Shown piece by piece: positions 26,142 through 64,000 of a DNA stretch of 64,000 bases; the stretch's first letter is position 1; each line of letters opens with the position of its first letter. The translations under genes and the position numbers were made by a program. This DNA comes from Takakia lepidozioides (taxonomy: Eukaryota; Plantae; Bryophyta). The notes below the pieces were generated by a model. The model saw only the letters and a list, made by a program, of their open reading frames with translations. It did no database searches and was not told the origin of the DNA. The stretch lies in NCBI GenBank assembly GCA_030704615.1, contig CM060733.1, positions 67,332,001-67,396,000 on the forward strand, written 5' to 3'.

Positions 26142-26214
26142 ACGGGGTCAAGAACAACCAGATGTGACAGGCATCTAGTGGGATCATGGTGGTTGGAGAA
26201 TTAAAGAATTTGAT

Positions 26215-29200: not shown

Positions 29201-29463
29201 TTGATGATTCTATGAAAGTAATCCAATTGAGAATTGGAAGCACAGACTTGACTGATGTACTGATAGATGGAGGCTCAGGAGTGAATATTATGACAGACCA
29301 ATTAAGGCAGAAACTTGGTCTGAGTAACATGAAACCAGCCCCATTTACAATAACAATGGTAGATCAAAGGAGTGTACTGCCTTTAGGCTTGATAAGAGGA
29401 ATAAAGATACAGATCCAAGAGATGATTTTTAAAGATCACGGTGACTGTGTTGAAAATGGATAA
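26215..29463 (+). pseudogene. 5' extra domain, Gag and aspartic protease (one frame, interrupted by stops)
   Basis: ORFs starting at 26215, 26734, 28129 and 28444 share a frame. Gag core GKGDPDVYISQF...RLFPCSLIKKASEWY; three CX2CX4HX4C knuckles (CAKC, CTIC, CYYC); RGNYQGNP repeats; protease DGGS. Confidence 0.9.
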
Positions 29464-29719
29464 TATCATGGAAGCTTACTCCTTACTGCAGGTTTGACCA
29501 TGGCTGAAACAGGCCAAGGTATTCCATGACTGGAATTCCTAGTTACTGACTGTGCATGATGGGAAGCACAAGATACAGGTCACCACTAAGAAATCTAGTA
29601 GGCTACCTGCTACTAGAAGACCTCGTGGAGTCAGAGAGTATGACTGGAGGGGAGGACTTGACGAGGAGCAGGAAGCTACCCTGTTTGCTGCGCACCCAGA
29701 GTGGGAGTAGGTTGCAGAA

Positions 29720-32700: not shown

Positions 32701-33629
32701 ATGATTTGCATCTTGGAACACAGATGCCATCACAGCCTACACTAGTAACACCAACGGAGCATGAAGTACTTGTCGTTAAGCCGAATGTGTATGGCCTGAG
32801 CGTAGAACACAGATGTTCACACAGTCATCATAGCCCATCACAACATCACACAGCCTATCACAGCCCAACACATTATCACACAGCCTGTCACAGCCCAACA
32901 CAGCCTACGCGGGTTGCACAGTCCATAGGATCAGTGACAGGTGGACACGGGTTAACGTCAGAAAAGTGGCCGGCAAGTGAAATGACAGTTTGGAAGTCAA
33001 ACTCGAAGAATGTGCCACGCGGACAGGGAAAGACGGGAGCATGTTTAGAATCGAACACATGGCCACTAGGGCGAAGCACACCGCGGTGCATATATTGCAA
33101 AAGTGGGTGTCATCATGCAAGAGGACAAATTGGGCCGTCAAAGTACCTACCCGGTATATCAGCCAAAACTAATTGTGGGCCCATTAATGCATTCAGGGCA
33201 AAGGTAACGGAACCCTTTACGTGTACAGCAAAGGGGGACCTTTGCCACATGTGTTGTCCTAGTGGACATTTCAGGTGGGAATGTCCACTGAGGGGGGTAA
33301 AATTAAGAAGTTACCCAAGGAGGCCACAGCCAATCAGGAGCGAGAATTTCATACAGGTGGTTCCCTCCAAGAAACAAGAACAAGAAATTAGAAGAGTTAT
33401 GAGCGGAAGAGTCAGGGTGGCTCCGAATAACCAGCGTCTCGACGGAAGGGGCAATCAAAGCTATAGCTTTGTAGCTATGGCGGATATTACAGACTACACA
33501 TTAGCTTTACTTCTCACGCAGTGGCGCAAGGACGGACAAATTGAAAGAACATTCTCTCTTACCCACTATCTGTAAGCCCCACAGGCTTACACGCACTTAC
33601 CCGTTCCTTTCTGTGCCAACCATACCTTT

Positions 33630-36600: not shown

Positions 36601-37240
36601 ATCATTGGGTCTTACCTTCAGTTCCACCCATATGTATCTGTATGATGCAAAAGTCATGATGCAGAAAGATTCCCAGCTTCGTTCATGGTTTAATTTGGCT
36701 TGGAACAACTTGGCCAAAGAGAAATTGGGCCCTGATGATATTTTCTATAAGGGACATGAAGCCTGGAAATACTTACACTGTTCCAAAGTCATTGGCACAC
36801 CTCTCACCTATACGGCCAAGGAGTTCAGGGAGTTCACTCATTTTGCCTGCAAGCGATTAAAGCAAGTAGTACAGTTTAAGCTTCCAGACATGGTGGGCCA
36901 ACATTGTATGCCACGCAGGATTCCGGAGGAGCCACTTAAAGTTTGGCAACCAAAGCACCTCAGGGGGGAAGATGATTCTGATACTACTGGTTCTGCAGAG
37001 GAACCTTTTGACATGGCGGAGGACTATGCACTACAGATGGCAGAGAAGAAACGACGGGGATCTCCTATGCCTGAGAGGTTACCTCGTTATCAACCACAAG
37101 AGGGTCAGACATTTCCATTTGGTGCTCAATCGCCTCCAACAGCCAGTAACAGGGCACGGGCTCGCACACAGAGCCCTCCAAAGGACTCTCACCGTCAGAA
37201 GGGTGCTCGCTCACAAATGTTTGCTGATCCTAAACAGTAA
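33630..37240 (+). pseudogene. Large 3' additional coding region: plant-transposon-type domain, acidic linker, coiled coil and unknown C-terminal domain
   Basis: FIQNF...VRGVDIEITPQYLQQLFDLP resembles the extra-ORF domain of Athila/Tat-like elements. A heptad-rich E/Q/L stretch lies at 35100-36000. The region is conserved in the second copy (60750-64000). Confidence 0.75.
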
Positions 37241-37261
37241 ACCCTAATGACACGGCTTTTT

Positions 37262-37278
37262 GAGAGGGGGAGGGGTAA
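37262..37278 (+). promoter_or_regulatory. Polypurine tract
   Basis: GAGAGGGGGAGGGG(TAA) immediately precedes the 3' LTR. Confidence 0.9.
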
Positions 37279-38269
37279 TGTTAGAGGGTGTTTGGGACTT
37301 AGACACTTTTATGGGCTCTGTGGGGTACCCTTAGTTTTTGCGCAAACTTACAGATGGTAGACTTAGACCAACAGAGGCCTTAGGGGTGACAGACATAGGC
37401 TTTAGGGGTGGTAGACGGACTTACATAGTCTGTCACAGTCATTCACAGTCTATCACAGATCGTCACAGTCTATCACAACTCGACACAGCTTCGCACAGCC
37501 AGACACAGCCCGACACAGCTTCGCACAGTTTCACACAGTCAGTCACAGCCCGACACAGCACGACACAGCCAGTCAGAGCTTGACACAATCATAGCCCGAC
37601 ACAGTTTGGCACAGCTCGTCACAATTACATAGGAAACGGTTATTATTGGCAAGGAACGACTGTGTGGGAACGACATCTGCAGAGGGAATGTGTTTACTTC
37701 TTAGGTGACAGTTAGTAGTTAGGTGGTTAGAACAGCTTGTAGATAAAATAGGCAGAGCAAGCATCATGGAGGATTTTTTCACAGAGAGCACTTCTTGGTG
37801 ATTCACGGAAGGAGATCGGAGGGAGAGCAGGAACGGGAGCAAGGATGGAGAGCACGGTGAAGAAGGAGGGATGACCAGTAGATGCTCGTTACATGAAAAG
37901 CTGTAGTGATATTGTAAAGCAGATTAGAGACACCATGGTTTTGGCCTGATACCTGATAAATCTTAATTTGATACTTATTCGATACAATCACATTGTAGAG
38001 AGACTTGAGTGAAGTTGTGGAATGAATGGTTGAGCAATCGGAACCTGGTAGATTGCTAAAGCAATCTGTTACTCAAATATAAACAGTAAGGTAATATGCT
38101 GATATGAAGGCAAGAAGGAATACAAACAAGAAGCACTACCATGATACACTAGATGTAGGTCATGACTGATTGTTCTAAGCAGGCTGAGTGCTTAGAGATA
38201 TCCAACTCTTCTATCTTGGAGTTCCCTCCTCGGATAGCAAAGGGATGGGTGAGTAAAAGCCGCTCGAAA
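37279..38269 (+). repeat. 3' LTR (991 bp; terminal CA mutated to AA)
   Basis: Collinear with the 5' LTR and followed by the TSD GACCA. Confidence 0.95.
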
Positions 38270-43309: not shown

Positions 43310-45370
43310 AGCTGACGGGTACGGCCCGCGAGGTACAGCCGGGGAACCCCCGCTCCGGCAGCCTCGTCGGCGAGCTGGACGCCCCATGCCAAATCAACCC
43401 CACCCCTCGCCCGTTACCCCGCCCCCACCCGCCCGCTACTCCCCGCGCCCCCCTGACCCCCCCGCGCCCGCCCGCCTGCCCGCCCGCCCGCCCGCCCGGG
43501 ACCCCTGAACCCGGCCCCACCACTGCCGCGCGGCGCCCATCTCCCACCCCCGATCTCCAGCCACGTGGCGGCCCCCGCTGTGGATCCCCTCACTGGGTTG
43601 ATCCCCCTTCCAGTGCCGGAGTGATCCCCCACCCCCATCCTCAGCCACGTGGCGCTACCCCAAACCGTCGATCCCCTCCCCATCCATCCAACCTCAATTG
43701 AATGGATGACGGCCGGTTGAAGGTCCCATGACGCGCCCATCGCCACGTGGCGCTCCCACCGCTGTCAATCCCCTCCTCCCATCCGCGGCGCGCTCCCCCG
43801 AGACGTCGCCGCTCCCCCCGACGCGCCTTGATCCCCCTTCCGGATCGGGAGTGATCCCCCAACCCCAATCGCCCACCACGTGCGGCTCCCCCGGACCGTC
43901 GATCCCCTGCGCATCCATCGGACCTCACAAACAGTGGATGTTGTGTGTCATCCGCCCCTCATCCCCCCGCATCCTCCCGCTCCCCCCGCCGTCGATCCCC
44001 TCTTCCCATCGACGGCCCGATCTCCCGACACGTCGCTGCCCCCCCCCTCCGTTGATCCCCAACCAATGTGGTGACTGATCCCCCTCCACCCATCAGACGG
44101 CATGTGGCACTCCCCCCTGCCGCTGATCCCCTCTTCCATCCACGGCGCGATCCCCCAACACGTCGCGGCTCCCCCCGACCTGGCTTGATCCCCACTCCGG
44201 ACCCGCAGTGATCCCCCACCCCTAATCGCCCGCCACGTGCTGCTCCCCCGAACCGTCGATCCCTTGCTCATCCATCCAACCTCAAAACAATGGATGTTCT
44301 GGGTCATCCGCCCCTCATCCCCCCGCCATCCTCCCGCTTAGTGGATGGACGACGGCCGGATGAAGGCCCCATGGCACGCCCACCGCCATGTGGACCTGCA
44401 TGTGTTGTTCACTTCGTCGTGGAGGTAGGGTTCTCCATCTGGATCGAGCGAGGGTTTCCAGCTGTCATGCTTGTTCGTGCTCCTGCTTCGATGGGCTTGG
44501 GATGACCTGCTAGGGCCTCAATCGTGTGTGCTCTACGGCGTTTGTGATTCTCTTGCGACTCACGTCTTGCATACAATGTGTACAGGGGGTTTTCTTCTTC
44601 TCTTCTTCTTCTTCTTCTTCTTTTGTTGTTTTTTCTTGTTTGCCTCTTTGTTGTTTGTTGTTTGTTGTTTTTCAGCCTCAACTTCATGTTTGTTTTTTCA
44701 TACTACATACCTTGCTAGATTCAAATGTGAACATCTGTGTGTTGCAGAATCGAACATGGTTGGGTATGGAGCAGCTGAATAGGATTGATGGAGGTTGGAG
44801 AGTCCAAGATGGTTGTATACCGGCCAGCTCATAATGCATGCACTTATAGGGATTTCTTTCTCGACCTAGCATGGTGTTTTACTCGTCCTACACAACGGTC
44901 TCTTCTCATGTTCCCTGGCCCTGCAGTTTAGGGTCCCCTTCTTCTCATGAGTTGTCTCCCTCCCTGAATCCGTCACTTGCAAACCCCCAAACATCCAATC
45001 CCTCCCGAGTTTTTGCTCCCCCACTGTCTGGTCCCCCCCCGCCGCTCCCCCTGTCTTCGCTGCCCACGTGTCACCTCCCTGACCACAGAATCGCCATGCA
45101 AGTCATATCCAGTACTCTCCGCACATGTCAGCTCCCCTCTACTAACATCCCCCCACGTGTCTGGTCCCCCTACTTTGATCCCCATGTTCTGGGAGGGGCT
45201 AGGGTTTCACTCCCCCTTCACATCTCCCCATGCCTGCTCCCCCTTATGACCGCCCAGATCTCCCCACGTGTCGATATCACTGATCCCCACTTTTGGTACT
45301 GTTGACACGTGTCCATCGACTGATCCCCTGCTCCCCCACGTGCTTGCTCCCCTAGCTACACTACACGTGC
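43310..45370. repeat. C-rich degenerate repeat blocks rich in CCACGTG(G/T)C and GATCCCC motifs
   Basis: A ~200-bp degenerate unit recurs at 43530-44400, with a related block at 45000-45370. They are separated by a pyrimidine-rich (CTT/GTT) tract. Confidence 0.75.
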
Positions 45371-45570: not shown

Positions 45571-48500
45571 ATGCCGAAGACTAGGCCTAAGGTTGTTCCC
45601 CCTGAGGATGGTATGCTGGTTTTTTGGCACAAGCCTAAGAAAGGGGACGAGGTTCCTTTCTGGTATACACCAACTGAGTGGGAGGAGATGATAGTGGAGG
45701 CAGAGGCGGACCTCAGAGTTTGTGATGGCGCAAAACAAAGGAATCCCTATAAGTGCAAGTTTTGTGGGCGGCCCATGAAGGATAAGGTTAGGTTGAATAG
45801 GCATGACATTGATGGGGAGGGTTGTCCTTGGTTGAACATGGTGGATGGTTGGGACGAGGTTCAGTTGCCACTAAAACCCTGGCCCGCTACCGAGTTCCCG
45901 AAGCAGGTTACTAATTTTGTGGAGAGGTTGAGAGGGTGTACAAACCCCGAAGTGCGGCGCGTACCAGGAGACGACGTGTCCCCTACTGATCGGCAGCAGC
46001 AGCCCAAAGGAGCGAGAAAACAGAAGCCTGATGCGCCTGCATCATCACAAGTGCCTGCCCCTCACTAGAGGAGTAGCCATAGTGGGTCCGACACCGATTT
46101 TGAGCGCACCAAACCAAAAAAGGGGGCAAAAAAGGTTAAGATTGTTACTACTTTACCCTCCGCCCGTGAGAGACAAGCCAAAGTGCGGCCTGAACTCGCT
46201 GTCACTTCGAGTAGAAAGCCAAAGAAAAAGTATCCCTACAGCCGTGAGCAGCCAGTAGCAGGAATGGGGGGGATCGGACATGGGGGGGATCCGTCTCAAA
46301 GTCAAGGGGGCCAGTCCAGAAAACAACGAAGGCACGCAGATGTGGGGGAGCAGACTACACAGGACGACGAGGGGGAGCAGACTACTCATCAGGACGAGGG
46401 GGAGCAGCCTGGGAGCTCGGGGCCTCTTGCAGGGGATGGGGCCATGGAAATCGACCACGACACACCACACCCGATCACTCCTGCTGGAACATTTATACTC
46501 CTGCAACATGGACTTCTCCCTTCCAATTTTGCTGACCAGAATGATGAAAGATTATGGGATGCATTTGTGGGTTTCGCATGGAGTGGAGGGTTTGCAAAGT
46601 GAGTGGAGAGGGCTGAACGCCACTGGAGAAGATGGCTTCTACAAGAACAGGTTTGATTCACCCCCCATTCTCCTTTTGAGTGTTTGGCCATCTGCTCCCC
46701 CCAATAGTTTCCCAGGATTGTCCCCGGTTTGTAAATGCTCATTCTGTGTTGCATTTTTGCCTGTAGATCAATGCTTCCGCGGGAAAAATTGAGGTTGTGC
46801 GGAAATCAGTGCGGGCATGGAGCACTTGCAAAGACGGCATTCCCTGTGCTCTATCCATTGGGCTGGAGTTGGAAGATTTTGAGAGCTACCTTGTGGGAAA
46901 GATGAGTACTCCTATCGTAACACCCTCCTGTCCGGTGAATGTTGTTCCCCCCATCATGCCCGTCTCTGCTCCCCCTTCATCGTCTACCCCTGCCCCCCCC
47001 CCTTCTGCTGCAAACAGGTCTGCTCGCCCCAAATCAAGTCCCCCCACATCATGTCCCCCTTGCACCGTTCCCCCCTCTGCTGCTCCCTCCTCTTCTGCTC
47101 CCCCCTCATCTGTAGATCTCCAGTTTGATATTGTTGAACTATTGCTGGAGGAGCAGGATGTTCGACGTCTGCTTCCTGAATTCCCTCTCCTAAGAACTGC
47201 CGAAGAATCTGATGCCATTGTCACCTGGCTGAAACGTCAATGTCCAGCCCGACTGCCTCCGGTCCTTGTTCCCCTCCAAGTTTTTTCTACCATGGACCCT
47301 CGACCCCCTGTTTCACACTTGTATCCTTTGGCCGATTTAAGACACGGCATCTGCCCCGGTCATATCATGATGCTTTTTGCACCGCAGACTGCTCACATAC
47401 TGCCCTACCATGGATTTGGACTCTTCTTGCATGGAGGTTGGCGGACGTTTGGGAATTTTCAGAATCAGGAGACTATGTTGAAAGAAGTGCTCCTGGCAGA
47501 GGGTCAGCTTAGATATGGTACAATGCAGGACAAAATGTAGATCGTCGACTCCTGCCGAGCATTTCTTCGCATGGTGCGTGCCCGAGCGTTTCATGAATTT
47601 GCAGCAACAGAAACCGCCCACTTCCAAGTTTTGTGGTGCAAGGGCAACGATGCCAAAGGGATACGACGTGCAGTGCGGGCCTGGGAGGATCTATTGTTTA
47701 GGCGGGAGCACATTGATTTGGGACGCTACGTGCATCTTTTGAGTAAGTGCATGCTTTGCCTCTCCAACAATCTGTCATTGTGAAGATCAGAATTGGAATA
47801 GATAAATGGGGGAGCAGACTTTACAGTCGGGGATCGGGGGATCAGGGGATCACGGGGGTCAAAGCTAAAATACAAGCGCTTGTCTCTGTGATAGGTGAGG
47901 CTGAGGCAGCTGATGTTGGAGTTCAAAATGCCATGGAGGAGGTCTTACGAGCAAACAAGGTGTTGTTGGCGAGAAGACATGAACTATACGACCGACGAGT
48001 GTCACCATATGCCCCTCACCTTTCCCACATCGACGTGGACGCCTTCAATTCATCGCAGTTGTCCCACCATGCATCGCTGATGGCGTCGCCAACACCCTCA
48101 CAGGTTGAAGACCTTCAAGCGCCTCATACAGAGACTTTTCAAGTGGAATCTCCGACGGCAGGTTTCTGCACACCCATTGCGGAAGTTGATGTCAATCCCA
48201 TCCCCTCTCATACTGTTCTGCCTCACAGTCTTCTTTTAGACTCCCCAAGGGAATATTCTGTTGCCCTCGCTGTCTCTACTGCCCCCGCCTCTTCTCCCCT
48301 TCCTATCTCTAATCGCTCCCAAGGAGCGGCCCTCCTCTCTGCTACCCTCTTTGTCTCTGCTGCCCCATCATGTGATGTCCCCGCCACTGCTCCCCTTCAA
48401 ATCTGTGAACCCGCACCAGGTGCTACCCTCCTCTCTGCCCCCCCCCCTCTATGTCTGCCGCCCTCTCTGCCACTCCTCCCCAACCATGTGATCCCCCCGC

Positions 48501-50322
48501 CTCTGCACTTCTTCCACTATCTGCTCCCCCAGAAGTGGCTACCCTCGTCTCACCGCATGCTATCCCATCGGACTCATCTCCCTCCTCGCATGAGTTTTCT
48601 TTTTGTGCTCCCCCCTCATCTGGTACTGCTTTAGTGTGTATCACTGCTCCCTCCCTTTCTGGTCTCCCTTTAGCCTTGGCAGCCCCCACCTCTACTCCCG
48701 AGGTTTTGTCTGCTCCCCCAGATCTGTCTTCTACAAAGCATGCATCCGTGTGTGACCCTGGCCCCCCCCTGTCTCCCCCTGACTTCCACTCTTCTTCCCC
48801 ACATGTGTCTGCTCTCTCGCATGCTACTGTGACTCCCTCTGGTCCCCCCCTCAGTGCTCCATCACCCGAGGTGTCATCCCCCAATGTTGTTCCCGATGTC
48901 ATGCCTGCTCCCCTCCATGTATATGCTCTGTCGCGGGCTGCTGTGTCTCTCTATGGTCCTTCACTCTCTGCCCTTGTCCAATCACCTCTTTCAACTCATC
49001 TTGAGTCTGTGTGTACTTCCCACGTGGAGGGGGAGGATGTGCCAAGAATGGTGGATCCAACTACCAAGTCCAGCAGATTTGCAGATGTTTCCGATCCTCT
49101 GCCGACGACACAGGTTGAGGTTATTTCAACGTTGGTGACCCCTCAACGCCAGTCATTGGCAGGGAACACCGAATTGGCAACGGAGGGGTTTGTTCCGCCC
49201 ATGTCAATTTTGCCAGGTGCACCCCCATATCATGCACAGGCCATCCCGTTGTTATCCGCACTCGCAGATAGTCTGGTCTCCCCCACAGCAGAGCGCTTAC
49301 TCCAGCCCCCTGGTACTGCTCCCATCGCTTCCACAGATCCTTGGAATATTGAATTGGGGGTCACCCCTGGCTCCACATTCACCACGGGTCTGACGGTGCC
49401 TGCGCCTATGGTTTCTGCTCCAACCCTCCTGCACATGGGTTTGACCTCCGGCAAACCATCATCTGGCCCAGTAGCAAGTCAAACATGGCATAGGGTTGTT
49501 GCAAAAACTTCGGGACGCCAATTGAACTTGCAGGGCATGGAGCAGGTGGATCAGAAAGAAACCAACGAAAAGGGGAAGGAGAAGGAACGCATGAAGGGCA
49601 AGGGGGAGCAGACCGGAGAGGGGATCGGCAAGGGGAAGCAAAGACCCCCGAAGGATGAGGGGGAGCCGAAGCGTGCGCAAAAAATACGGGTGACGATGTG
49701 GGGGGGGGAGGAGAACCGTGCAGCTAAGGGGGAAAGTAAAGCTATCATCAGAACAGGGAAGAAATGGAAGGCGAAATCTGGTCGGCCAGAAGTCACTAAG
49801 TAAGTGGGCCAGGGCTTCCAACGACCAAGGGGGGACCAAATTCATGGTGAGTACATTCAGCAGGGCTTACACGCATGATAGGGGGATGATATGGTTGCTT
49901 GAAAACACCCTTAACAGTTAATTGCCTGCCTGTCTGACTTCGTGAACTTGTGTACAATACAGAAACCAGAATAGACTGAGGGAAAAGCTCCCAGAGGACA
50001 AGGGCTGCCTTGTTTTCTTCAAAGGCACTCCACAGGAGTCCATTTTGGGTTCATGGGATTATCTACGGTTGTCAAAATTGTATGGGGAAGCGGGGGATGG
50101 AGGGGTGTTTTTGTATGCCAATATTTTGCAGCTATCCCTATAGGAGAGTAATTGTTGCTGGTGGGCTGTGATGGACACACTGATATGGACGGCTTTGGAC
50201 GCATCATCGAAGGACGACCTTCACAAGATTTCCAAAGGGCTTGTAAATGATTGGGTAACTGAGAAGTGCCTAGGGAAGGATCCAGATAAGGTTCAGACAT
50301 GGTTCATCCCCTTATGCTTTGG
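45571..50322 (+). pseudogene. Spliced gene: zinc finger, unknown helical domain, Pro/Ser-rich linker, N-terminal half of a Ulp1 (peptidase C48)-like domain
   Basis: ATG at 45571; YKCKFCGRPMKDKVRLNRHDIDGEGC; frame-preserving intron 46651-46766. The last exon reads SWDYLRLSKLYGEAGDGGVFLYANIL...AVMDTLIWTAL...VNDWVTEK...WFIPLCFG followed by a GT donor. In-frame stops at 46066, 46600 and 47538. Confidence 0.55.
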
Positions 50323-50660
50323 GTACGTCCCTCAATCCACCTATTTTGCAGCTTTGATCGACTTTGATTTGATTTGGAGAATGGAAAGCATTAGTGGTGT
50401 CTGGCCTCAAACACATGTGCGTTCGGGGGCTGCTATTTCATGAGCGGCATGAGCATGAGCGGCATGAGCATGAGCGGAAAAAAAAAAAGCATGAGCAGAC
50501 CATTGTGAGTCCACGGAAATAGGGTTAGGAGGCACGGAAATAGGGTCATGTGAAGTTGGAATGTGGCACCAGTGGACTTGAAATGCAACATTTTATTGCA
50601 AATTTTGTGGCAAGCCACGTCTATACAAGTGTGTTCTAACTGTCATAGCCGGAATGGGCA

Positions 50661-53600
50661 CTACTCTCCTACACCCTCCGAGGAACTTGCCCCACCTTCT
50701 TCCTCATCCCCCTCATCCCCCTCATCCTCCGAGCTCTGTGATGCATCAGTTCCACTATGCCTCTCAAAAATCCCGTCCTCTCCTTGGGGGACTGTCCACC
50801 TCACCTCCTGGGAATCTTCTGCGTCTTCTCCCCCACTTTCCTCAGCAGAATCCAACACAAATCTACGAGCCCGACGGGCTCTAATAGCTGCTGCCTCCTC
50901 CCTCATCTTCATTTTCTTGAGGCTTGCCTCGTCTAAAATCTGCTGTACACGACTACGTTCGGAACACCTCCTAATGGACACCGAAGCAAGCCGGGCAGCA
51001 TAAGTAGGAAGGATGTACTCCCTTTCTGGACTAGGCATGAAATCCCCCCTGGCAAAAAAAGGCACGTTCCTCCTGCCCATGAACTCCGGTGTAGACGTCC
51101 CTCCGGCAGTACTTGGCATCCTACAGTAAGAACAAATTCACTTGAAGAATGTCAATACCAGCACAACCAGAAAGGGTTTTCAATGAAATAAGAGAGCGGA
51201 GGGAGGTGCCTCACAAAATCTGGAGGCAACTTACAATGCCACCACTCACTCGTAAACCGGGGGCTCCTCGGCCTCGATCCCAACTTCCTCCCCCTGCTCC
51301 TTCTCGGATTTTTCCTCATCCTCCGAGGATGCCTCTTCCTCTTTCGGCAGACGTTCAGCCGCTGCAAGTTCCGAGTTGTGGAGGGCAGTATCTGGCTCGA
51401 AGGCGAACACATGCCTGTCGGACAACGTCCCTGCCCACATTGAAGCACCTGAGGAACAAAGCGGGCGGTTAATAGCTTGCGGCATGCAATTGCAATGGGC
51501 CAGGGGACAAACTGAGCACGTGAAGGCTTACTCGTGCCGCATGTGAGGTCCAGAATCCGCCCTTGGACATCCGAGCACGTCTCCATGAGGGTTTGGATGA
51601 AAGCAGGGCTCCGGGTCCGGCTGTACCGCCACGGTTTGCCTGTCTTTGTGTCCTTCGGCATACTAGAGTGGGGCACATAGTTGTAGAGGACATCGTAGGT
51701 TACAGGGTCCACAGCGGCATCAACAAGACGACCGTCGTTGCGGAATTTGAACGTAGACCCTCTCTTCACAAAGCAATATGCCTCAAACACCAATGTCTGC
51801 ACATCCAACAAAGAAGGGATCAATTCCAGGGTCTACTTAACATACACCACAATATGAAGTGAATGCAATAGATTGATAACTTACACTTTGGCCCTCTGTT
51901 CGCAACCCCTGCGTACTGATGCAGAACCATTTTCTGAGGAGGACCGGGGTGACACTTTTCGGTGTCCACCTTGCCACCGCATTCTCTGTGGTCTTCCCTC
52001 TCGTGGCAAGGACAACCACACATCCACCGTCATCCAGAAGCATCCCCGCCAGCCCAAACCCGGCTTTCCAGTAGTCCTCAGTAAACCTGTTCCAGGTGGG
52101 CACACCATCCAGGCCCTCCAGCAGCTCCCCATCTGGAATGTCGAGGAGAATCATGTCGCAAGCTCTCTCCACCTCAACCCCCCCCCGAGTGCTCTTGCAA
52201 TTCGTGCTCACAGCCGTGAAGAATTCCATCATGGCTTCAAAACCAGGGGTGTCTTTAGGCTCTGTACCGGCAGCCCTCTCTTGGCTTTCCCCTTCTGCTC
52301 CGCCAGAGACTTGTTGTGTGCCACCTTCTTCGCCCTGGCAGCGAGAGCGTCAAGGAAGCTCTCATTGACGCATTGGATGATGGTTGGAGGTTCTAGCTTT
52401 GCCTGTGCGTAAACGTCACCGCCGAATACCGCCGTGTAGGCTCGCCCTCAAATGCCAACTTCTTGGCAGAGCCAGTCCCACTCCGAACTGACTTGGGAAC
52501 CCGGACGACCGGTGACTGGGTAGGAGCAACAGCAGTCGCAGGACCTTGAACAAAATCGGCGTCGGAGTCACTCTCTTGGGTCCCCTCCTGCGCCTCCTCC
52601 GATGCCCCGATGGTTTTCTTCTTTTTGGGTGTTACTGCAGTCACCTGTTTCCTTGTCCTTTTCCTTTGACCTTTACTCTTCTCATGCAATTTCTCCTGAA
52701 TTCCTGCCTGAGCAAGCTCTGCCGCTTTCCTGGAGTTCGCAAGCGCTTTTGCCTCTTTTGCACCCAACGGAGGCAGCGGAGCCGGTTTCGTCGGAATTCA
52801 GCATCCAGCTTCAATTGAAATTCGGATGGGTCGAGCGAGCCGGGCGGAAGGTCCACATACCAAGGGCAATCACGCAAATGTTCCAGATGCCACTCCTTCA
52901 CAATATTGTCAGTGTACATGGAGTCAGCCCCAGGGTTCATCCATGCCAGGAAGAATGGTGGCTCGAAAGACAGATGACCTTTCTCCAAAAGCGAGAACTT
53001 ACAGTACCTGCATTCATGAAAAACACAATGAGGTCCGAAAAATGGCTAAGTCCCTGGACGGCAATAGGGCCTGGAACTGGAATATGGCGCCGAATTTCCA
53101 CTTCAGGGCTAGCCAGTCTAGGGACTTAGCCCGAAAATGGCTGTCCCTGGACGGCAATAGGCCTAGAACTGGAAAACGGCGCCGAATTTCCAGTTCCGGG
53201 CCAGCCACCCTAGGGACTTAGCCCGAAAAATGGCTAAGTCCCTGGATGGCAATAGGGCCTAGAACTGGAAAACGGCGCCGAATTTCCAGTTCCGGGCCAG
53301 CCACACTAGGGACTTAGGCCGAAAATGGCTAAGTCCCTGGACGGCAATAGGGCCTAGAACTGGAAAACGGCGCCGAATTTCCAGTTCCGGGCCAGCCACC
53401 CTAGGGACTTAGCCCGAAAATGGCTAAGTCCCTGGACGGCAATAGGGCCTAGAACTGGAAAACGGCGCCGAATTTCCAGTTCCGGGCCAGCCACCCTAGG
53501 GACTTAGCCCGAAAATGGCTAAGTCCCTGGACGGCAATAGGGCCTAGAACTGGAAAAACGGCGCCGAATTTCCAGTTCCGGGCCAGCCACCCTAGGGACT

Positions 53601-56355
53601 TAGCCCGAAAATGGCTAAGTCCCTGGACGGCAATAGGGCCTAGAACTGGAAAACGGCGCCGAATTTCCAGTTCCGGGCCAGCCACCCTAGGGACTTAGCC
53701 CGAAAATGGCTAAGTCCCTGGACGGCAATAGGGCCTAGAACTGGAAAACGGCGCCGAATTTCCAGTTCCGGGCCAGCCACACTAGGGACTTAGCCCGAAA
53801 ATGGCTAAGTCCCTGAACGGCAATAGGGCCTGGAACTGGAAAATGGCGCCGAATTTCCAGTTCCGGGCCAGCAAGTCTAGGGACTTTGCCATTTTCGGAG
53901 CCCTGACTGGAAATTCGGCGCCATTTTCCCTAACACCACTTAGGCCTCTAACATCCTGAAATGCCAGGACTTGAAAGAAAGGCAGCGCGTATGTACCTGT
54001 ACAGAAGGCGCATTGCTGCTTTGTCCGCGTTCGGCTGGTCGGTGAACTCGTGGCTCCGGCGAGCATCTGCTATCTCCCGAAAGAATAGGTTGGTTTTGTA
54101 GAGCAGAAAGTACCTCGTCACATAGTCACGTAGGCTCTCTGCTGCAGGAGATATCTCCATCTTGAACTGATGTGCTTGTGTGTCCAGCTGCTCTTGCGCA
54201 TTCGTCGTCACCTGTGGAGATTGTCCATCAGATCGCTTTCCTCAAAAAATACAATGAATCCACCCCCTACTAGAGTAGAAGCCCCAAACGAAGCGTGGGG
54301 ATGTACCTGAAACCACCATGTCATGCGGTTCATCCACATGTCGAATGTGGGGTCAGAGAGTTTGTCCGGTTTGGGGAAGCTCCACATGTCCCTGGTACTT
54401 TGGGAACCATTCCAGATTTGGAGCCACCGGGTCTGTCCAACCACCCAGCATATTCGTAAGCGCCAAACACCACAAAAAGGAGTTGTTGCCACCACAATTT
54501 GGTTAAGAATGTATCACCTTTTCTGTTGCATCCACACAGGATGTGGCTAGACGATGGAGCTTCTCCAATGTCATCGTGGGCTTCAGAGCGCGAGAGTAGT
54601 GCTTCCCCACCTCCCAGAAAGTCGGCACCAAGGGCGGGATCAGCTATGGCCACGTACTTTACCATCCGTGACTTGTACTTTATGCGGGCCCTCACCTCCG
54701 CAGCTTTGACATACGATTCGAGTTCCGGGAGGGTTGGATTCTTCTCCTCTGACTCCATGTAGAACCTCCGCGCATGTGCCAAATCCTGCTGTATTTTCGT
54801 CTGTCGAAAAGGCGCACATAAGATTAGAGATCCTGCTCAACACAATTTCTTCTATTGGGGAGGAGAGACAAATTAGCTCAACAAAACTGTCAGGAGCTTT
54901 ACCCGAAATATGTAGTCCACCATGGCGTCGACGCTCAGCCTATACCAGGTTCTGTCTGCCTTTGCCTCCGCTTGGCAGGAGGTCGGCACTGAGGGAATTG
55001 GCAAACTCTTGCACCCCCTGCTTCCCGACATCCTTCACTCGGAAGAGCATATGGGACAAGTTGGTGGCAATGAAGGCATTCTCAGTCACCCTGCAGTGCC
55101 CCATTTCCATCAAAAATACTGAAATGGGAATTTTCATCATATATGAGGATTCGCAATGAAATGACTTCCAAATTCAAAGTCCAAAAGCGAGAGGGGTTGT
55201 AGCTTACGAGTTGATGTCGGCCATTGCAGCTTTGAGAAGACTGCGATCTTTGGGCCCCGCACCTTCAGGACAACACAATCGACGGCGAATGCCAATCGAG
55301 ATCGTTGGGGTGGGCTTGGGCAATGTGCTCCATCCATGCCAGGAGGCGATGATTGCCGTCCCACACGTAGAACATCTTACCGGACATGTGCTGGAAAAGA
55401 GGATCACTAGCAATCGATCTCTCGAACTCCTCATTTCGCGTTTGCCAATGGGGACCCCATTTGTCCACCTCATCGGAAGTGTGGGCACGGGAAGCTCCGT
55501 GGTCGTTCTCAATGGAAACGTAAAAGGCGGCAGACCCCATTCGATATCCATCCCGGAAAGAGAATTTCAGCTTGTCGATATCGCCTGGGAGGGCAGGTCT
55601 CACCACCTGCAATGACACCAAGCGGCAAAGGGGAATTCGAAGCTTGGTCGGGTACACCATGCCCCCAGCACCCTGCCAATGTTGCTGTGGTTTGCCTCCA
55701 ACATCTTGGCAGCGGCCAACTTCATATCCGCCTCAGACATGACGTCTGCTGCAGAGGGGTTTTCCGGCAGCCCACCAGGACCGCCAATCAGCCTGTATGC
55801 TCCGTTTTGGGGCCTGGGGATGTCCGGGAGGATGTCATCCTGGTCAGAAACCTCCATGTCGTCCTCCTCAACAGGGTCAGCCACCTGCGAAACCCTCCAG
55901 CACTCTCGTCGTCTCTACTGCCCTCTCCCTGGCTTCACCTCGAACTTGCACAATCCGTGCTCTTTCAGGTGTTCTATCCTCTCCTCCACTCTCCACCGTA
56001 TGGGTAATTGCGGGGGCTGCTCTTGCCCGCGATGGTCTAACCGGTGTGCTACTGCCTCTCTGTGGTGTCCTGGTAGGGATCCCCGTCTCTGTGGGTCCCT
56101 CGCTTACATTGGCATCTGTCATTTGGGCACCCCTGGCCTCTTCAGCTGCCTTTTGTCTTTCTCCTGGCTAGCATTCTGTCTCGTCTGTTCTTTTGCCCTC
56201 TCTTTTTGCCTCTCACGGGCTTTCTGTTTCTTACTAGGGCTAGCAGCAGGGGAGCCCTCCAAGACGACCACCTTTGATTGAGGCGAACTGACACCCTTGC
56301 GCGCACTGCTCACTCCCCCCTCCGCACCGTGACTGCTCTCTCGCCGGGATTGCAT
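50661..56355 (-). pseudogene. Spliced gene encoding a ParB/Srx-like domain fused to a beta-class N6A/N4C DNA methyltransferase-like domain (frameshifted as assembled)
   Basis: Seven GT-AG introns (55091-55207, 54786-54902, 54212-54306, 53008-53996, 51797-51884, 51449-51531, 51121-51249), each locally frame-preserving. Motifs: IPLCRL..QVVRP, FYVWDGNHRLLAW (DGNHR at 55346-60), CDMILLDIPDG (DIPD at 52131-42), RSPAFIQTLMETCSDVQGRILDLTCGT/SASMWAGTLSDRHVFAFEPD. The start codon is uncertain. Confidence 0.75.
53035..53930. repeat. Nine-copy ~95-bp tandem array, each unit with two inverted repeats, plus a terminal inverted partial copy
   Basis: GAATTTCCA recurs at 53092, 53184, 53280, 53375, 53470, 53566, 53661, 53756 and 53851. 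Stems: GAACTGGAAA..TTTCCAGTTC and AGGGACTTAGCC..GGCTAAGTCCCT. Confidence 0.95.
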
Positions 56356-56785
56356 GTGCTTTTAGCTTTCTTCTTTTTCTTTGCGTGGGCGGGCCCTACT
56401 GCATGTGCATGAACAACCTCCATTGCCGGATCTGCTGTCCTCATGTCCCACGCCCTTCACCTGCCATGCCGCCTGCACCAACCTCCCCAATGCCTACTCT
56501 GTCGTAATCTCGTTGCAAGTCCCTCTCGTCCACCAACAACAGGTTTAAGTTTGCCCTCTCTCCCCAAGTTGGGCGATTCAAACATGCGATGAGTTGGAGC
56601 TGTCGATGATACCCACCAGCGTGCCGGGCTCGTCGTCACTCTGTCATTGACAAAAATCGTGAAAACCACATCGATGCAAAAAGCATCATCGCAACGAGCA
56701 GCGCAACCACCATAACAACAATCATGTAGCAAAATGAAACATAACAATTTAGAAAGTATGGAGAGCCATGCCACAACAATGAAAC

Positions 56786-57285
56786 NNNNNNNNNNNNNNN
56801 NNNNNNNNNNNNNNNNNNNNNNNNNNNNNNNNNNNNNNNNNNNNNNNNNNNNNNNNNNNNNNNNNNNNNNNNNNNNNNNNNNNNNNNNNNNNNNNNNNNN
56901 NNNNNNNNNNNNNNNNNNNNNNNNNNNNNNNNNNNNNNNNNNNNNNNNNNNNNNNNNNNNNNNNNNNNNNNNNNNNNNNNNNNNNNNNNNNNNNNNNNNN
57001 NNNNNNNNNNNNNNNNNNNNNNNNNNNNNNNNNNNNNNNNNNNNNNNNNNNNNNNNNNNNNNNNNNNNNNNNNNNNNNNNNNNNNNNNNNNNNNNNNNNN
57101 NNNNNNNNNNNNNNNNNNNNNNNNNNNNNNNNNNNNNNNNNNNNNNNNNNNNNNNNNNNNNNNNNNNNNNNNNNNNNNNNNNNNNNNNNNNNNNNNNNNN
57201 NNNNNNNNNNNNNNNNNNNNNNNNNNNNNNNNNNNNNNNNNNNNNNNNNNNNNNNNNNNNNNNNNNNNNNNNNNNNNNNNNNNNN
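56786..57285. other. Assembly gap (500 N)
   Basis: Run of N. The true size and the adjacency across it are unknown. Confidence 1.
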
Positions 57286-60200
57286 AAAGATCCTTTCCCT
57301 TTGCCATTCACAGAAGCGGTATTGGACACTATGGCAGGCCATGAGAGTACTCATTCATGGATGGCTTCAGTGGTTATAATCAAGTGCAAGTGGTAGAAGA
57401 AGACCATGGAAAGACAGCTTTCATCACAGACTGGGGTGCTTATGCATACAAAGTCATGCCTTTTGGACTTTGTAATGCACCAGCAACCTTTCAGAGAGTG
57501 ATAAGTGAATCTTTTCATGAGTATTGGATGATTTCATGCAGGTGTTCTTGGATGATTTCAGTGTGTACAGCTCTAAGAATGAGCACTTGCATAAATTGGA
57601 GTTATGTTTGGCCAGATGCAGGATGAGAGGTCTGGGCCTGAATCCAGAGAAGTGTACTTTCTGTGTGAACTCAGGGGTGCTTTTGGGACACATTGTGTGT
57701 AAGAGGGGACTTTTGTGGATCCCAGAAAGACAGAGGCCATTAAAGCCTCTCCACCACCAGTAAATGTTAAGAGTCTAAGGAGATTCCTTGGACAAACCAG
57801 TTATTACAAAAGATTTGTCAGACGGTATGCACAGATAGCAGCACCATTGAGCAAGCTTCTGAAGAAAGATGCAGTGTTTGCATGGACAGCTGAATGTCAA
57901 CACGCTTTTGAGGAACTTACATTGTCAGTAACAACTACACCTGTGCTGATTAACCCTCACTGGCATGTAGTATTTCATGTTCACTGTGATGCCTCAGGAG
58001 AAGCGTTGGGAGCAGTGTTAGCCCAAAATGTTACAGGAAATATAGATTCACCTGTAAACTATGCTAGCAGGTTGATGAACAGTGCTGAAAGGAACTATAG
58101 CACAACTGAAAGAGAAGCACTGGCAATGATTTATGCAGTCAAGAAATTCAGGCATTACCTATTGGGAAGAAAGTTTATGTTTTATGTGGATCACCAGGCT
58201 CTGATATATCTGGTGAACAAACCTTTGATAAGTGGAAGGATAGCAAGGTGGTTAATAATCTTGCACGAGTTTGAGTTCGAAGTTGTTTACAAGCCTGGCC
58301 GTTTGCATCTTGTGGCAGATCACTTGTCACGCCTATCAACAGGAGAGCCCGCCACAAGAGTAGACGACCAATTACCTGATGCGAGTTTATTTGCGGTGGA
58401 GGTGCAGGGAAGTGCAGATGACTGGTTAGATTGGCAGTGGCCAATCAGATACTACCTTACTCATGGTCAGTGCCCACCTAGTTATGGAAAGGAGCAGAGG
58501 AAGAGAATCGCTATCAAGGCTTTACCTTATACTATGGTAGGGGGCAGAATGTATAAGCTAGGACCTGATGGAGTACTTAAACGATGCTTGTACCACCATG
58601 AAGTAAATAAAGTTTTGGAGGAAGTTCATAAAGGAGTGGCTGGAGGTCATTTTGGAGAAGAGACTACCAGTAGGAAGATACTACTTGCAGGTTACTGGTG
58701 GCCTACTTTGTTCAAAGATGTACACAAGTATTGTCAGAGTTGTGATGAGTGTCAGAGGCTAGGACCATTGCAGAGATCTGGGAAGATGGCTTTGCATCCT
58801 ACGATGCCTACTGAACCATTTCAGAAATGGGGACTAGACTTTGTTGGACCAATTAACCCACCAGCCAAGAATACACAGAACAAGTATATAATCACAGCCA
58901 CTGATTATACTACAAAGTGGGTGGAAGCTAAAGCTCTGAGGGACAACACAGCTAAGTCCACAGCAAGGTTCCTGTATGAGAACATACTTACACGATTTGG
59001 CTGTCCCCTGGAATTTATCAGTGACCAGGGAAGTCACTTCATTAATGAGACCATTGAACTATTGACTAAAGAGTTCATGATTGTGCATAGGAAGAGTACA
59101 ACATATTACCCACAGGGTAATGGGCAGGCAGAGGCTACCAACAAAATACTATGTACTATCTTGGCTAAGATAGTCAATGCAAACAGAACAGATTGGGATA
59201 CAAAGCTGCTGACAGCTTTGTGGTCATACAAGACTTCATATAAAGTCACCACTAAGTATACACCATTCCAATTAGTTTATGGTATGGAAGCTTTACTTCC
59301 AGTGGAATTCTTGTTACCTACCATGAGAACTGAATGGGGAAGGAGAATGGAATTGGAAGATTCAATTAAGGTCAGGAAACATGAATTATACCATGTGGAA
59401 GAAGTACGTGCTGATGCAGCTGATAACATGACCAGAATTCAGATGAAGAGGAAGGATCAGTTTGATGAAGGTAAATTAAAGACTTTTAAGACGGGAGATT
59501 TGGTACTGTGGTTGCAGAAGAAGGGGAAGATTAAAGCTTCTAAGCTTAAATCACCATGGAAAGGACCTTATGTCATACAGAAGATGTATGATAATAACAC
59601 CGCCATGTTACAAACCATTAACAAAGAAATGCTGGGAAGAGTCAATGCCAATAAGTTGAAGGGGTACAGTGGTATCCATGACAAACCATTGCAGCACGAT
59701 TTGCATGTTGAAACGCAAAAACAGTCACGGGCTGCGCCAGTGATACCAACGGAGTATGGAGCACTTGTCGCTAAGCCGAGCGTATATGACCAGGGCGGGA
59801 AGTACAGGTGTTTGCATAGCTATCACAGCCCATCACAGTGTCACACAGCCTATCACAACCCATCACAACGTGACACAGCCTATCACAGCCCATCACAGCG
59901 TGACACAGCCTATCACAGCCCACCACAGTGCCACACAGCCTGTCACAGCCCAACACAGCCCATGCAGGTTACACAGTCCATAGGGTCAGTGACAGGTGGA
60001 CGCGAATTAACGTCAGAAAAGTGGCCATCAAGTGAAGAAGAAGTTTGGAAGTCAAACTTGGAGAATATGCCACGCGGAGAGGGGAAGTCGGGGGCATGTC
60101 TAGAAACGGACACGTGGCCACTAAGGCGAAGCACACCGCACTGCATCGATTGCAAAAGTGGGTCTCATCATGCAAGAGGACAAATAGGACCGTCAAAGTA

Positions 60201-63200
60201 CCTACCCGGTACAGCAACTAATACTAATTGTGGGCCCATTAATGCATTCAGAGTAAGGGTAACGGAACCCTTTTCGAGTACATAAAAGAGGGACCTATGC
60301 CACATGTGTTGTCCTACTGGACATTCCAGGTGGGAATGTCCACGGAGGGGGGTGGAATTAAGAAGTTACCTAAGCAGGCAACAGCCAATCAGGAGTGCGA
60401 ATTACATGCAGGTGGTTTCCTCCAAGAAACAAGAACAAGAAATAGGAAGTGTTATGAGCGGAAGAGTCGGGGTGGCTCCGAATAGCCAGTGTCTCGACGG
60501 AAGGGGCAATCAAAGCACTAGCTTTGTAGCTATGGCGGATGTAACAGATTACACACTCGCTTTACTTCTCACGCAGTGGCGCAAGGACGGACGAATTGAG
60601 AGTACATTTTCTCTCACTCGATACTTGCAAGCCCCACAGGCTTACACGCACTTACCTGTTCCATTCTGTGCCAACCATACCTTCATGCTCTGTGCCCTGC
60701 AAGCTTTCCTTCAGCTGTTTCAAACAAAGCCTTTTTGTTTGTCTAGAATGAAGAGAGTGAGGGGAATGGAGGATATCAGGGTGAAGAGCACCACGATACT
60801 GCAGAAGCAAACAATTGCTACACCGCAGGCAGTGCAGCTGCTAAGGGAGTTGCGATTGGAGGGGCTGCTACGCAAGGACTGGTCCTTGCATCATCGGCAG
60901 TTTATGATTCAATTTCTTCAGAACTTTGAGCCTCGGACGGGAGTTACCCAGGTGAGGGGAGTAGATATAGAAATTACTCCCCAGTACCTGCAGCAATTGT
61001 TTGATTTGCCATCAGGTCATGTGGATGTGGATGAGCACAGGGCAAGATTGCAGATAGGGAATTTGTTCCAAGAAGGGAGTTTCTTTAAGACTCAAGGTTA
61101 CGCTTGTACCAAAGCCGAGTACCCAGGGCTCAGAGAAGTTGGCCAAATATTGAACGTTTGTTTGCCATGAAACAGAACCAACAGTATTTGAGCAGGTCAT
61201 TCACAGAGGAGATCCTGAAAGCTTTGAGGGGAGAGGATGTAGCTTGGGCGGAGTTAATGTACAATGGTCTGGTGGACGAGATGAAGAGGTTACAGGGCAC
61301 TGCTGCTAAGTCTCCGATCATTGTGTCTGGTCCAGTCATTGCCCAAATCATTCTTGACTCTTGCATACTTGATACTCGGGAACGTAAGGAGATGGGAGTG
61401 TTTGAGGCAGTAACCACTGCAATTGAAGAGCAGGGCTCTTCACATAGTGAGGGTGGACTGGCAAGGCAACACCAGTCTAAAAGACAGAAGCGGGGTATGA
61501 CTGTAGTGGCGGATCCACTGGCTTCACGGAAACCGCAAGATGATGTTTCCCAAGCTCTTGTGCAGGATGGGGCACAACAGCACAGAGAGCTGTTATTATT
61601 GGAAGCACGGCCTTCGGAGAGGGAAGAGGAAGTCACTTTGATACCACAGCCACCACAGCCAGTTGACTCAGTTGTTTTAGAGGTTCCACAGTTAGAACAT
61701 GCTGTGACACCACCCCCAATTGCTCTGGACGGAGAAGGTTGGACATTCCCACTACAGAGCAGGTCGTGGCCGAAATTGAGAAGGGTGACCTTCTCTATGA
61801 AAACTCTGGCTTGGTAAGGGAATCAGTGGTTCCAGAGGTGCAGCGCTTGTCCAGGGAAAACCCTGCTGTGCATGTAATACCCACACCTGTGACGGAGGTA
61901 CCAGGGGTAGAATATAAGGACACTGCAACACTGTGGAGGATGAGGTGGTTCAGGAAGAGAATCTGGTGGGGCAATGGCCTGAATGGTTGGTGAGGCATCA
62001 CACTGTGGGCGATCAGGGAGAACAGCAGCAAGTTCACCATGATGACCCTCAGCAGGCCATGCTTATGAGTTCCATAAGCAGGACACTTAATTTGTTGGGC
62101 ACTTATGTGAAATCCCATGTTCCATCTACCCAATTGGCAGCTTTGAGGGAGGAACTCAGGAAGGAGTTTGAGGCTTGAATTGCCACTGAGTGTGCTAACA
62201 AGGTAGATGAGGAGGTCAATCTCAAGTTACAGCAAGAGTTGGAGGACACAAAGGCTGCTTTGCAGTTGGCCAAGGGACATTTGATTGAAGCAGGCCTCGA
62301 GCAGGACCAGTTGCATGAAGCACATAAGCAACAGTTATACCAATTGCAGGTGAAGCATGAGGGCAAGTTGCAAGAAGTGAATGTACTAATACAGAGTTGG
62401 AGGCAGTACATGAGAAGATGACCATACAATGTGCTACACTCACAACTACTCTGAGCAAACTGCATTAGAAGTTAACAGACAAGGGGAGAGATGTATGAAG
62501 GCAGAAGCTGAGATAATAGAGCAAGCGAAACTCATTGTTGATATGAAGAATACAATCTGTCGCAATGAGAATACTTTCAAACAATACAGACAGGTTGAGG
62601 CTGACCAGGAGAGGTACATCCTGGAGTTGCAACAAACAGTCATGGTCAATAGAAATGAACTCTCTGTGGCTAACAAGGCTTGGAAGGAAGCCAATAATCT
62701 GGCTGCTGCCTATGCAGGTCTGGTTGAACCTCATGCAAAGCGCATGGAGGCTTTACAGCAGCAGTTAGATGTGTACAGACTCACGGAGGAGCAGACTCTC
62801 AGGGGTGCCACACACGACTTGGTGGATAACCACCTTATGCAGGTCTGGTTAGCACAAGGCCGGCAAAGGCAAAGCACCACGGAAACTCACCCAGGGCGAG
62901 ATGAATGAGCTCAGATTGCAGGTGCAGAACATTGCCACAAGTACTATAGACAATGTCTATAGTAGGATAGCGAAGCTACAGGAGGACGTGGAAGGCCTGC
63001 AGACTCAAGTGGATGACCTGAGTTCAAATATTGACAAGAGAGTCTTTGTTCCTGAGGAGCAGCTGATGGCTACTTATTTACATGCTAGGACTCTAATTTT
63101 TCAATCTTCTTCACAGGGGGTGCAGGAGATGCCAGTGGTAGAAGAGTCAGTGGTACCAATACCACAGCAGGCGGCTGTGCAGGTAGCTGACCCTGTTGTT

Positions 63201-64000
63201 ACTACAGCCACACCACAGCCTGAGGTATGGGGGGATGCTGCTTTTAACCCACCTAGGACTCCTGCTGCACGGGAGTACAGTCGGGCTATGATTATGCTCT
63301 TCAACCAAATTCCCATTGTGTTGGATTTGGCTTGGAAAGAATTTAGTCCTCCGCAATCGTTGGCACATTACTACCAAATCATGCGCATATGATTGCCGGT
63401 GGCAACTCGGACTAAGGTTCTTCCGAACAATCGACCCATTGAGGATCATCACTTTGCCAGGTACTGGTCTGAGGCAGGTACCATGCTGAGTGAATTAATT
63501 GCCTTCCAGGTTGTACATGGGTACATCTATACCAAGACCAAGGAGCTATCTAGTATTGTCATGGGCTGTGGATTATACTATGCTGCTTGTTTTCTAGCAC
63601 GTTATCACAGATGCAATCCCGATTTCTGAGTTATTCCAGTGGGGATCATTGGGTCTTACCTTCAGTGCCACCTCATATGTACCTATATGATGCAAAAGTT
63701 ATGATGCAGAAGGATTCCCAACTTCGTTCATGGTTTCATTCGGCTTGGAACAATTTGACAACATAGAAATTCGGCCCTGAGGATATTTTCTTTAAATGAC
63801 ATGAAGCTTGGAAATACTTACACTGTTCCAAAGTCATTGGCACACCTCTTACCTATACGGATAAGGAGTTCAGGACGTCACTAATTTTGCTTGCAAAGGC
63901 TTACAACAAGTTGTACAGTTTAAACTTCCAGACATGGTGGGACCACATTGTATGCCACACAGGATTCCACTAAAGTTTGGCCGTTAAAACACCTAAGGGG
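57286..64000 (+). mobile_element. Second, partial copy of the same Ty3/gypsy family (RT to 3' extra region)
   Basis: Collinear with about 30317-36965, with many substitutions. The 856-aa ORF at 57715-60285 covers RNase H, integrase and the extension. Confidence 0.96.

Follow-up and report, generated by a model that had tools for sequence, protein, structure and literature searches.

What is a spliced gene that joins a ParB-like domain to a bacterial-type DNA methyltransferase (MTase) doing in the genome of a moss? The question is raised by a stretch of 64,000 nucleotides of Takakia lepidozioides (assembly GCA_030704615.1, contig CM060733.1, positions 67,332,001 to 67,396,000), hereafter the window, which holds such a gene on its minus strand. 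A preliminary description, made from the letters of the window alone, had taken this ParB-MTase gene for a DNA-modifying gene of phage or prokaryotic origin that had gained introns and rides in plant mobile DNA. We found that the gene is the cargo of a large Mutator-like DNA transposon. By analogy with a transposon protein of Arabidopsis, VANC, it probably lets the transposon recognize its own DNA and escape silencing.

All of the motifs named at the outset lie on the minus strand and in the order first given. In the window copy, the ParB motifs are IPLCRL..VRP followed by FYVWDGNHRLLAW (DGNHR at 55360-55346), the MTase region carries DMILLDIPDG (DIPDG at 52142-52128), and the motif for S-adenosylmethionine (SAM), RSPAFIQTLMETCSDVQGRILDLTCGT and SASMWAGTLSDRHVFAFEPD, is interrupted by intron 7. 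The open reading frame (ORF) pieces are indeed joined through canonical GT-AG introns, eight in number and not seven, and the frame is kept across every junction. When X stands in for the breaks, the stretch 55884-50664 reads through as 1183 residues; it has eight 1-nt frameshifts but meets no in-frame stop if the donor at 51249 is used. Coding-like low-complexity sequence with further frameshifts lies 5' of 55884, up to about 56640. The gene does not start at 56355, and its 5' end may fall in the assembly gap at 56786-57285. This is not a chance assembly of frames, because the read-through matches protein P0164 of the liverwort Riccia in both regions and in the same order, with E 5e-23 for the ParB and helical region and E 1.6e-8 for the MTase region (E-values for a 10-sequence set). 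The gene, from its 5' side, and the end of the element are laid out as follows.

55661-56640, minus strand: N-terminal low-complexity region with several frameshifts.
55208-55660, minus strand: ParB/sulfiredoxin-fold domain with IPLCRL, VRP, DGNHR and AMADIN, and frameshifts near 55662, 55286 and 55250; based on 447 homologues, conservation and a fold match.
55091-55207, minus strand: intron 1, phase 2, which directly follows the Asn conserved in AM(H)DIN; identical site in Riccia and Adiantum.
53997-55090, minus strand: exons 2-5 (55090-54903, 54800-54518, 54432-54307 and 54211-53997), the all-helical middle, with frameshifts near 54977 and 54618.
54902-54801, minus strand: intron 2, by GT-AG and frame.
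54517-54433, minus strand: intron 3, by GT-AG and frame.
54306-54212, minus strand: intron 4, by GT-AG and frame.
53008-53996, minus strand: intron 5, 989 nt; contig 29 of run X8 joins exon 6 to the end of exon 5.
53039-53930, unstranded: array of nine 95-nt units and an inverted partial unit, in intron 5; 10 matches with 0 expected, all inside the intron, z -4.6.
51885-53007, minus strand: exon 6, with the end of the helical region, a basic/acidic linker, the degenerate motif IV DIPDG, PxWN and LDDxG; 1-nt frameshifts at 52278, 52400 and 52781.
51797-51884, minus strand: intron 6, phase 0, position and phase common to Riccia; run X8 skips 88 nt, CT..AC.
51532-51796, minus strand: exon 7, motif X and motif I (DLTCGT).
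51449-51531, minus strand: intron 7, interrupting motif I; contig 27 of run X8 skips 83 nt.
51250-51448, minus strand: exon 8, end of motif I, motif II (FAFEPD) and an acidic stretch.
51121-51249, minus strand: intron 8, acceptor 51121, donor 51249 (TGA skipped, frame kept) or 51234 (TGA kept); RNA joint 51119-51234, CT..AC.
50661-51120, minus strand: exon 9, an extension of the C-terminus that bears conserved LPxYA and F(V)xDxA motifs and ends in an acidic tail; same motifs in Riccia P0171/P0166 and in locus L015.
50579-50583, minus strand: poly(A) site of the family transcripts; poly-T loose end before 50579 in an X8 contig of a diverged copy.
50425-50480, plus strand: terminus of the Mutator-type high-copy element, starting GGGGGCTGCT, with subterminal CATGAG repeats; depth step, mixed flanks.

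Four sequencing runs were compared with positions 47500-53030 of the window, the array intron excluded; introns 1-4, which rest on frame and homology, and five of the frameshifts lie outside this interval. One of the runs, X8, was inferred to be of RNA type, and its contigs are mRNA-like. Contig 27 skips precisely introns 6 and 7, with 3-4 differences per exon, and contig 29 passes from exon 6 directly to the end of exon 5 (loose end 53010); splicing therefore takes out the 989-nt intron, and one transcript spans the helical half and the MTase half. The check by RNA that had been suggested for the splice junctions thus came out in favour of introns 5, 6 and 7. The same joint across intron 5, together with fusions annotated in Riccia (P0164 and P0171) and Adiantum (P0078 and P0141), ruled out that the two domains belong to separate genes, in agreement with the fusion first proposed. 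The Riccia annotation gives P0164 (1207 aa), like many paralogues, as a single protein with both domains, and collinear homologues were found in Ceratodon.

At 52278, 52400 and 52781 the main contigs of runs X6 and X8 restore the frame, and neither the main copies nor the transcript share these frameshifts. The window copy also has an unusual last base in exon 7, since nearly all other copies have DLTCGTG there (T51532C in 15526 of 15696 depth, run X1). The reading frame of the family is open, and near-identical copies are open and transcribed. The frameshifts of the window copy are either private mutations or long-read indel errors, and error is favoured because there are eight indels and no nonsense codon. 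Another contig uses the intron 8 donor at 51234, leaving a TGA after PPVYE that the donor at 51249 bypasses, and the stop codon in Riccia likewise overlaps a donor. A choice between a short and a long C-terminus may be a conserved option of splicing. The last exon, with LPxYA and F(V/F)xDxA in its acidic tail (window 50661-51120, Riccia P0171/P0166, L015 17991-18470), is accessible only through splicing past the stop that overlaps the donor.

A search with the ParB piece returned 447 relatives. Those with names come from Riccia sorocarpa, Adiantum nelumboides and Ceratodon purpureus, and the rest are fragments from metagenomes and sequencing runs. Both domains of the window match Riccia and Adiantum proteins in order. 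Site and phase of intron 1 in the window agree with those in Riccia and Adiantum, and intron 6 recurs in Riccia. Because these positions are shared, the spliced gene appears, by sequence comparison, to be old in land plants or to have spread among them after intron gain; the introns that it was said to have gained are thus old ones.

At 50425 the read depth climbs about 2000-fold in run X1, from about 10 to about 20,000, and 40-100-fold in run X6, from about 6 to 200-600, although contig depth is not equal to copy number. Several different flanks join at 50424/50425. The window shows one end of the element; the other lies past the gap and a Ty3 element. These two take up the upstream side, in that order, and no MULE (Mutator-like element) transposase is visible in the window. 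More complete copies are found in Riccia, in which four loci are elements of 9.7-17.9 kb with common ends beginning GGGG (termini GGGGGCTAGT and GGGGATTAGT). They are flanked by target duplications of 10 bp in L001, L003 and L007 and by a 9/10 match in L008. The depth step and these duplicated targets bear out the idea that the gene is carried by plant mobile DNA. A divergent MULE-type transposase lies upstream in three of the four Riccia loci (L001, L007 and L008), in Adiantum L009 and in L002; Ceratodon L014 has a different MULE transposase, also divergent and upstream. These assignments are based on Atlas matches to MULE/ZSWIM RNaseH-like proteins and on weak Pfam matches to MULE and SWIM, below cut-off. 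Long terminal inverted repeats (TIRs) were not found at the ends, which have short, degenerate inverted ones and are of the non-TIR type. In L011 (1-1532) and L013 (267-1737) the gene lacks intron 1 and adjoins DUF4216/DUF4218 genes; because these neighbours are CACTA-type, the gene appears to move between transposon superfamilies.

Two candidates for element boundaries were rejected. A 10-mer at 11076, considered as a second target duplication, is on the wrong side of the terminus, and the first inverted pair in L001 (14284-14316) is not the element end, which is at about 15850. The Riccia elements also contain a small coiled-coil ORF near the left end (L001 3409-3873; L003, L007 and L008) and, in L003, L007 and L008, an ORF with Pro-Gly-Tyr repeats near the right end. 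At the end seen in the window, contig 6 of run X1 (window 50210-50424) continues past the exact terminus into about 250 nt unlike the window, a possible empty-site allele that would make the insertion polymorphic and recent.

Most of the lineages examined bear palindrome arrays of their own. Each 95-nt unit in intron 5 of the window copy has two palindromes, one centred on GGCGCC and one with 14-bp arms around CGAAAAT. The Riccia elements have 24-28 copies each of CC(A/G)GCG-N5-CGC(T/C)GG, 106 inside the elements and 1 outside (the pattern was derived from the same loci), and these are concentrated towards the two ends and in the interval that separates the divergent genes. Ceratodon L014 (7919-9700) has 11 copies of CCTACG-GTGA-CGCAGG between the transposase and the gene, Adiantum L009 (10167-11493) has 7 copies of CCTGCG-TTGA-CGCAGG, and L015 has 36 copies of TGTCGGATCCGACA. 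The 16-bp cores of moss and fern are identical at 14/16 positions and centred on TGACG, and their half-site resembles that of Riccia.

A model of the Riccia homologue covering the ParB and helical regions (pLDDT 81) matches ParB, Noc, KorB, PadC and sulfiredoxin (Srx). Its best match is Caulobacter ParB, with Z 9.6 and a root-mean-square deviation (rmsd) of 2.2 over 99 residues; Z is 8.3 to KorB and 6.2 to Srx, and KorB was at the top of a wide fold search. On this model we regard the predicted ParB-CTPase fold of the N-terminal domain as established, as the early assignment to the ParB/sulfiredoxin fold had anticipated. The G-N-H-R residues (GxxR phosphate motif) and the R of VRP are conserved in at least 90% of 52 sequences, and DGNHR or EGNHR is present in 73 of the 88 motifs scored. 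The ParB piece of the window, modelled alone by single-sequence AlphaFold, gave an unusable pLDDT of 36, and sequence searches of the PDB returned chance or weak matches only. Alignments to Myxococcus and Bacillus ParB continue for 190-197 residues into the DNA-binding domain at an rmsd of about 8. The modelled helical middle region is possibly related to that domain, and a helix-turn-helix in it is plausible. The nucleotide of a ParB protein is not predictable from its sequence (PMC12704722). A 181-aa eukaryotic cluster, mostly from Mollusca, matched the ParB part in a fold search with TM 0.52; these may be animal relatives.

We suggest, at an even chance of being right, that the product is a self-recognition factor like VANC that is loaded at the palindromes of its element, with the MTase fold serving as a SAM- and DNA-binding or weak module. 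A dimer would bind the element's own palindromes through the helical region, and a nucleoside triphosphate at the conserved R/GNHR pocket would gate loading and probably sliding, as in ParB and KorB. The protein would then spread along the element and keep its promoters open against host silencing by 5-methylcytosine (5mC), as VANC does. The MTase-fold domain most likely would still bind SAM and DNA or flipped bases, and we propose a weak or non-catalytic module because the aromatic residue of motif IV is lost.

Several observations weigh against this proposal. No palindrome array was found in L002 and L010, L004 and L011 have only 3-8 copies of a non-palindromic motif, and the intron array of the window copy is without the core of moss, fern and liverwort. 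No clear match to a helix-turn-helix emerged: the extended ParB alignments have the high rmsd given above, and the top-scoring helical hits do not rise over the background Z. Whether the protein would activate or repress can be proposed by analogy only.

Judging from its motifs and matches, the C-terminal domain is of the beta-class N6/N4 methyltransferase fold, with phage proteins as its nearest look-alikes. Motif IV precedes X-I-II as in the beta class; the Riccia homologues match PF01555 with E 1e-5 to 5e-5, just under the gathering score, and phage DNA-methyltransferase PHROGs; and Atlas placed the domain with phage N6_N4_Mtase clusters (score 0.95). All of this agrees with the permuted beta-class order noticed at first. 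Single exons of the window had no match in Pfam, and a word-based homologue search with the motif IV exon found nothing. Motif I and the motif II acid persist in relaxed form (DF(A/V)GGWGA, DLT(A/S)STGA, family consensus DLTCGTG, with E ending the next strand), and the pattern D-x-T/A-x-G/S-x-G-A and the motif II acid are kept in liverwort, moss and fern. The catalytic (D/N/S)PP(Y/F/W) was not found. Motif IV reads D/N-hydrophobic-P-x-G/D, where x is S, T, E, K, I or D in 38/38 variants, which include many Riccia paralogues and so are non-independent. The first residue is D in 34 and N in 4, and P is present in 33/38. The window has DIPD, and the second Pro and the aromatic are absent almost family-wide; one Adiantum protein reads DVPF, the sole exception seen and outside the pattern used for the 38 variants. 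The aromatic residue of motif IV stacks on the flipped base. Because it is missing in every variant counted, methylation by the family protein is doubtful, and because the defining catalytic motif fails we do not class it as an active N6-adenine or N4-cytosine MTase. The name of a DNA-modifying gene is therefore not one that we would retain.

It is possible, but on the unlikely side, that the protein is nevertheless an active amino-methyltransferase with a non-canonical motif IV, which ParB directs to the palindromes and which places N6-methyladenine (6mA) or N4-methylcytosine (4mC) on its own element, in line with the early suggestion that the gene possibly marks or protects its element. The permuted order, the kept D/N and P of motif IV, the persistence of motifs I and II in three plant groups, the Atlas match and the DVPF copy speak for it, as do the PF01555 genes in red-algal transposons. 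Against it are the loss of the stacking aromatic, the relaxed FxGSGT motif and a mutation in the bdelloid enzyme N4CMT, in which the change of SPPY to APPA (two residues) abolished activity (PMC8885841). A larger version, in which a complete ParB-parS-like module with a nucleotide-gated sliding clamp at the palindromes carries the active non-canonical enzyme and its 6mA or 4mC counters host 5mC silencing, seems to us unlikely. If true, it would be a self-targeting epigenetic writer of eukaryotes, switched by CTP or ATP and kept since the split of liverwort, moss and fern.

Quite unlikely, in our judgement, is a role confined to transposition or self-repression, in which ParB, bound to palindromes near both ends and around the divergent promoter, would loop or clamp the element to serve the transposase, or repress it in the manner of KorB, and would leave host methylation unaffected. 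The distribution of the Riccia palindromes, termini with just short, degenerate inverted repeats and the rank of KorB in the fold search would fit such a role. However, it leaves the retention of the MTase fold unexplained, the gene also occurs in a CACTA-type context (L011 and L013) and is not tied to one transposase, and palindromes in an intron fit spreading better than end pairing. That the gene is a captured passenger without function, with unrelated repeats for palindromes, is very improbable: numerous fragments among the annotated copies and the frameshifts of the window copy speak for it, but the idea is largely refuted by the conservation of motifs, domain order and intron 1 in liverwort, fern and Takakia, by the spliced open-frame transcript and by palindromes confined to the elements.

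The self-recognition factor that we prefer has partial precedents. The closest are the PAG genes of red algae. In Plavaka and Mutator elements of Bostrychia, a ParB-like gene stands beside inverted-repeat arrays and a PF01555 gene, and self-binding and self-modification were proposed; in these two genes, PAG2 and PAG3, ParB is fused to a 2-oxoglutarate oxygenase and PF01555 to SET (10.1101/2025.02.11.637652). Compared by description, both systems are found in large DNA transposons, have a ParB-like gene by inverted-repeat arrays as well as PF01555, and form a cassette that moves between superfamilies. In land plants, unlike red algae, ParB and the PF01555-like part are in one polypeptide and motif IV is degenerate. 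No SET or oxygenase domain was found in the Riccia homologues with Pfam. In the VANDAL elements of Arabidopsis, VANC is the product of a Mutator-like accessory gene for which anti-silencing was shown and whose family-specific motifs are multiplied in non-coding DNA (PMC5735166). The land-plant family resembles it in being a Mutator-like accessory gene with element-specific short motifs. It differs in that VANC has DUF1985/DUF287 domains, neither of which was among the Pfam matches of the window exons and homologues, and non-palindromic 8-9-mers, and in that anti-silencing would be deduced for the land-plant protein.

Prophage ParB-N6_N4_Mtase fusions are known (PMC12704722), and so are ParB-terminase loci (PMC4738411). 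The fusions have the same two domains in the same order, and the MTase part is closest to phage families. The land-plant protein is different in its length of about 1200 aa, a 45-residue ParB insert, the large helical region, linker, acidic tail, introns and degenerate motif IV. No phage ParB was matched by sequence in viral contig scans or in phage tblastn with the ParB domain, and in the ParB tree, which has no prokaryotic rows, the window is unresolved among metagenome rows; descent from a phage fusion, as first supposed, did not gain support. With the ParB, Noc and KorB CTPase clamps the protein shares the N-terminal fold, a GxxR-type motif, a following helical domain and multiple candidate palindromic sites, whereas it is without ParA and has GNHR instead of GERR. 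N4CMT of bdelloids and MpDN4MT1 of Marchantia are likewise prokaryotic-type beta-class amino-MTase folds in a eukaryote. In contrast to the multicopy cargo without SPPY described here, they are active host genes with SPPY or TSPPY, and no ParB domain is reported for them in the available portions of the sources. Orthology to them was rejected, and the link drawn earlier is limited to the shared fold.

What is new is that ParB and MTase are joined in one polypeptide, whose active site is degenerate and which occurs across liverwort, moss and fern; the related palindrome cores are new as well. The suggestion that the gene might be undescribed holds for the fused land-plant form, for which no description was found in the literature searched (most subscription papers are outside it), and fails for the concept of ParB, PF01555 and inverted repeats in a transposon, already published for red algae. 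VANC is the only transposon protein shown to bind its own element and change its epigenetic state (10.1101/2025.02.11.637652). The land-plant family offers a second, structurally readable system, with a predicted ParB-type nucleotide switch, discrete and lineage-specific candidate palindromes, an MTase-fold effector and the tractable hosts Ceratodon and Riccia. It would test whether ParB clamps slide on eukaryotic chromatin and whether transposons of seed-free plants place 6mA or 4mC. Taken with the red-algal cassette, it suggests that eukaryotic transposons recruited phage ParB and DNA-modification modules repeatedly or long ago. The protein-palindrome pairs could become site-specific epigenome tools.

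The rest of the window contains other genes and elements. At 45572-50325 on the plus strand is a broken gene of single-copy depth, with a small zinc-finger-like stretch and a middle rich in Pro and Ser. The gene has no significant Pfam match, and its last visible exon ends in TWFIPLCFG. The ParB-MTase transposon was inserted into a putative intron after this exon. The convergent gene (45.5-50.3 kb) was considered as cargo of the element, which its single-copy depth ruled out, and it is the insertion site. Two related Ty3/gypsy-like elements at 26000-37500 and 57300-64000 have long extensions past the integrase. Their CpG observed/expected ratio is 0.26-0.33, whereas the ParB-MTase element has 0.64-0.73; a younger age and a lower level of methylation would each account for the difference. 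GC-rich repeats with CACGTG and GATCCCC at 43417-44340 lie just upstream of a frame like ORF1 of a long interspersed nuclear element (43387-42545, minus strand). An intact intronless ORF at 17697-19700 (minus strand) resembles EIN3/EIL, and we take it to be a land-plant host gene.

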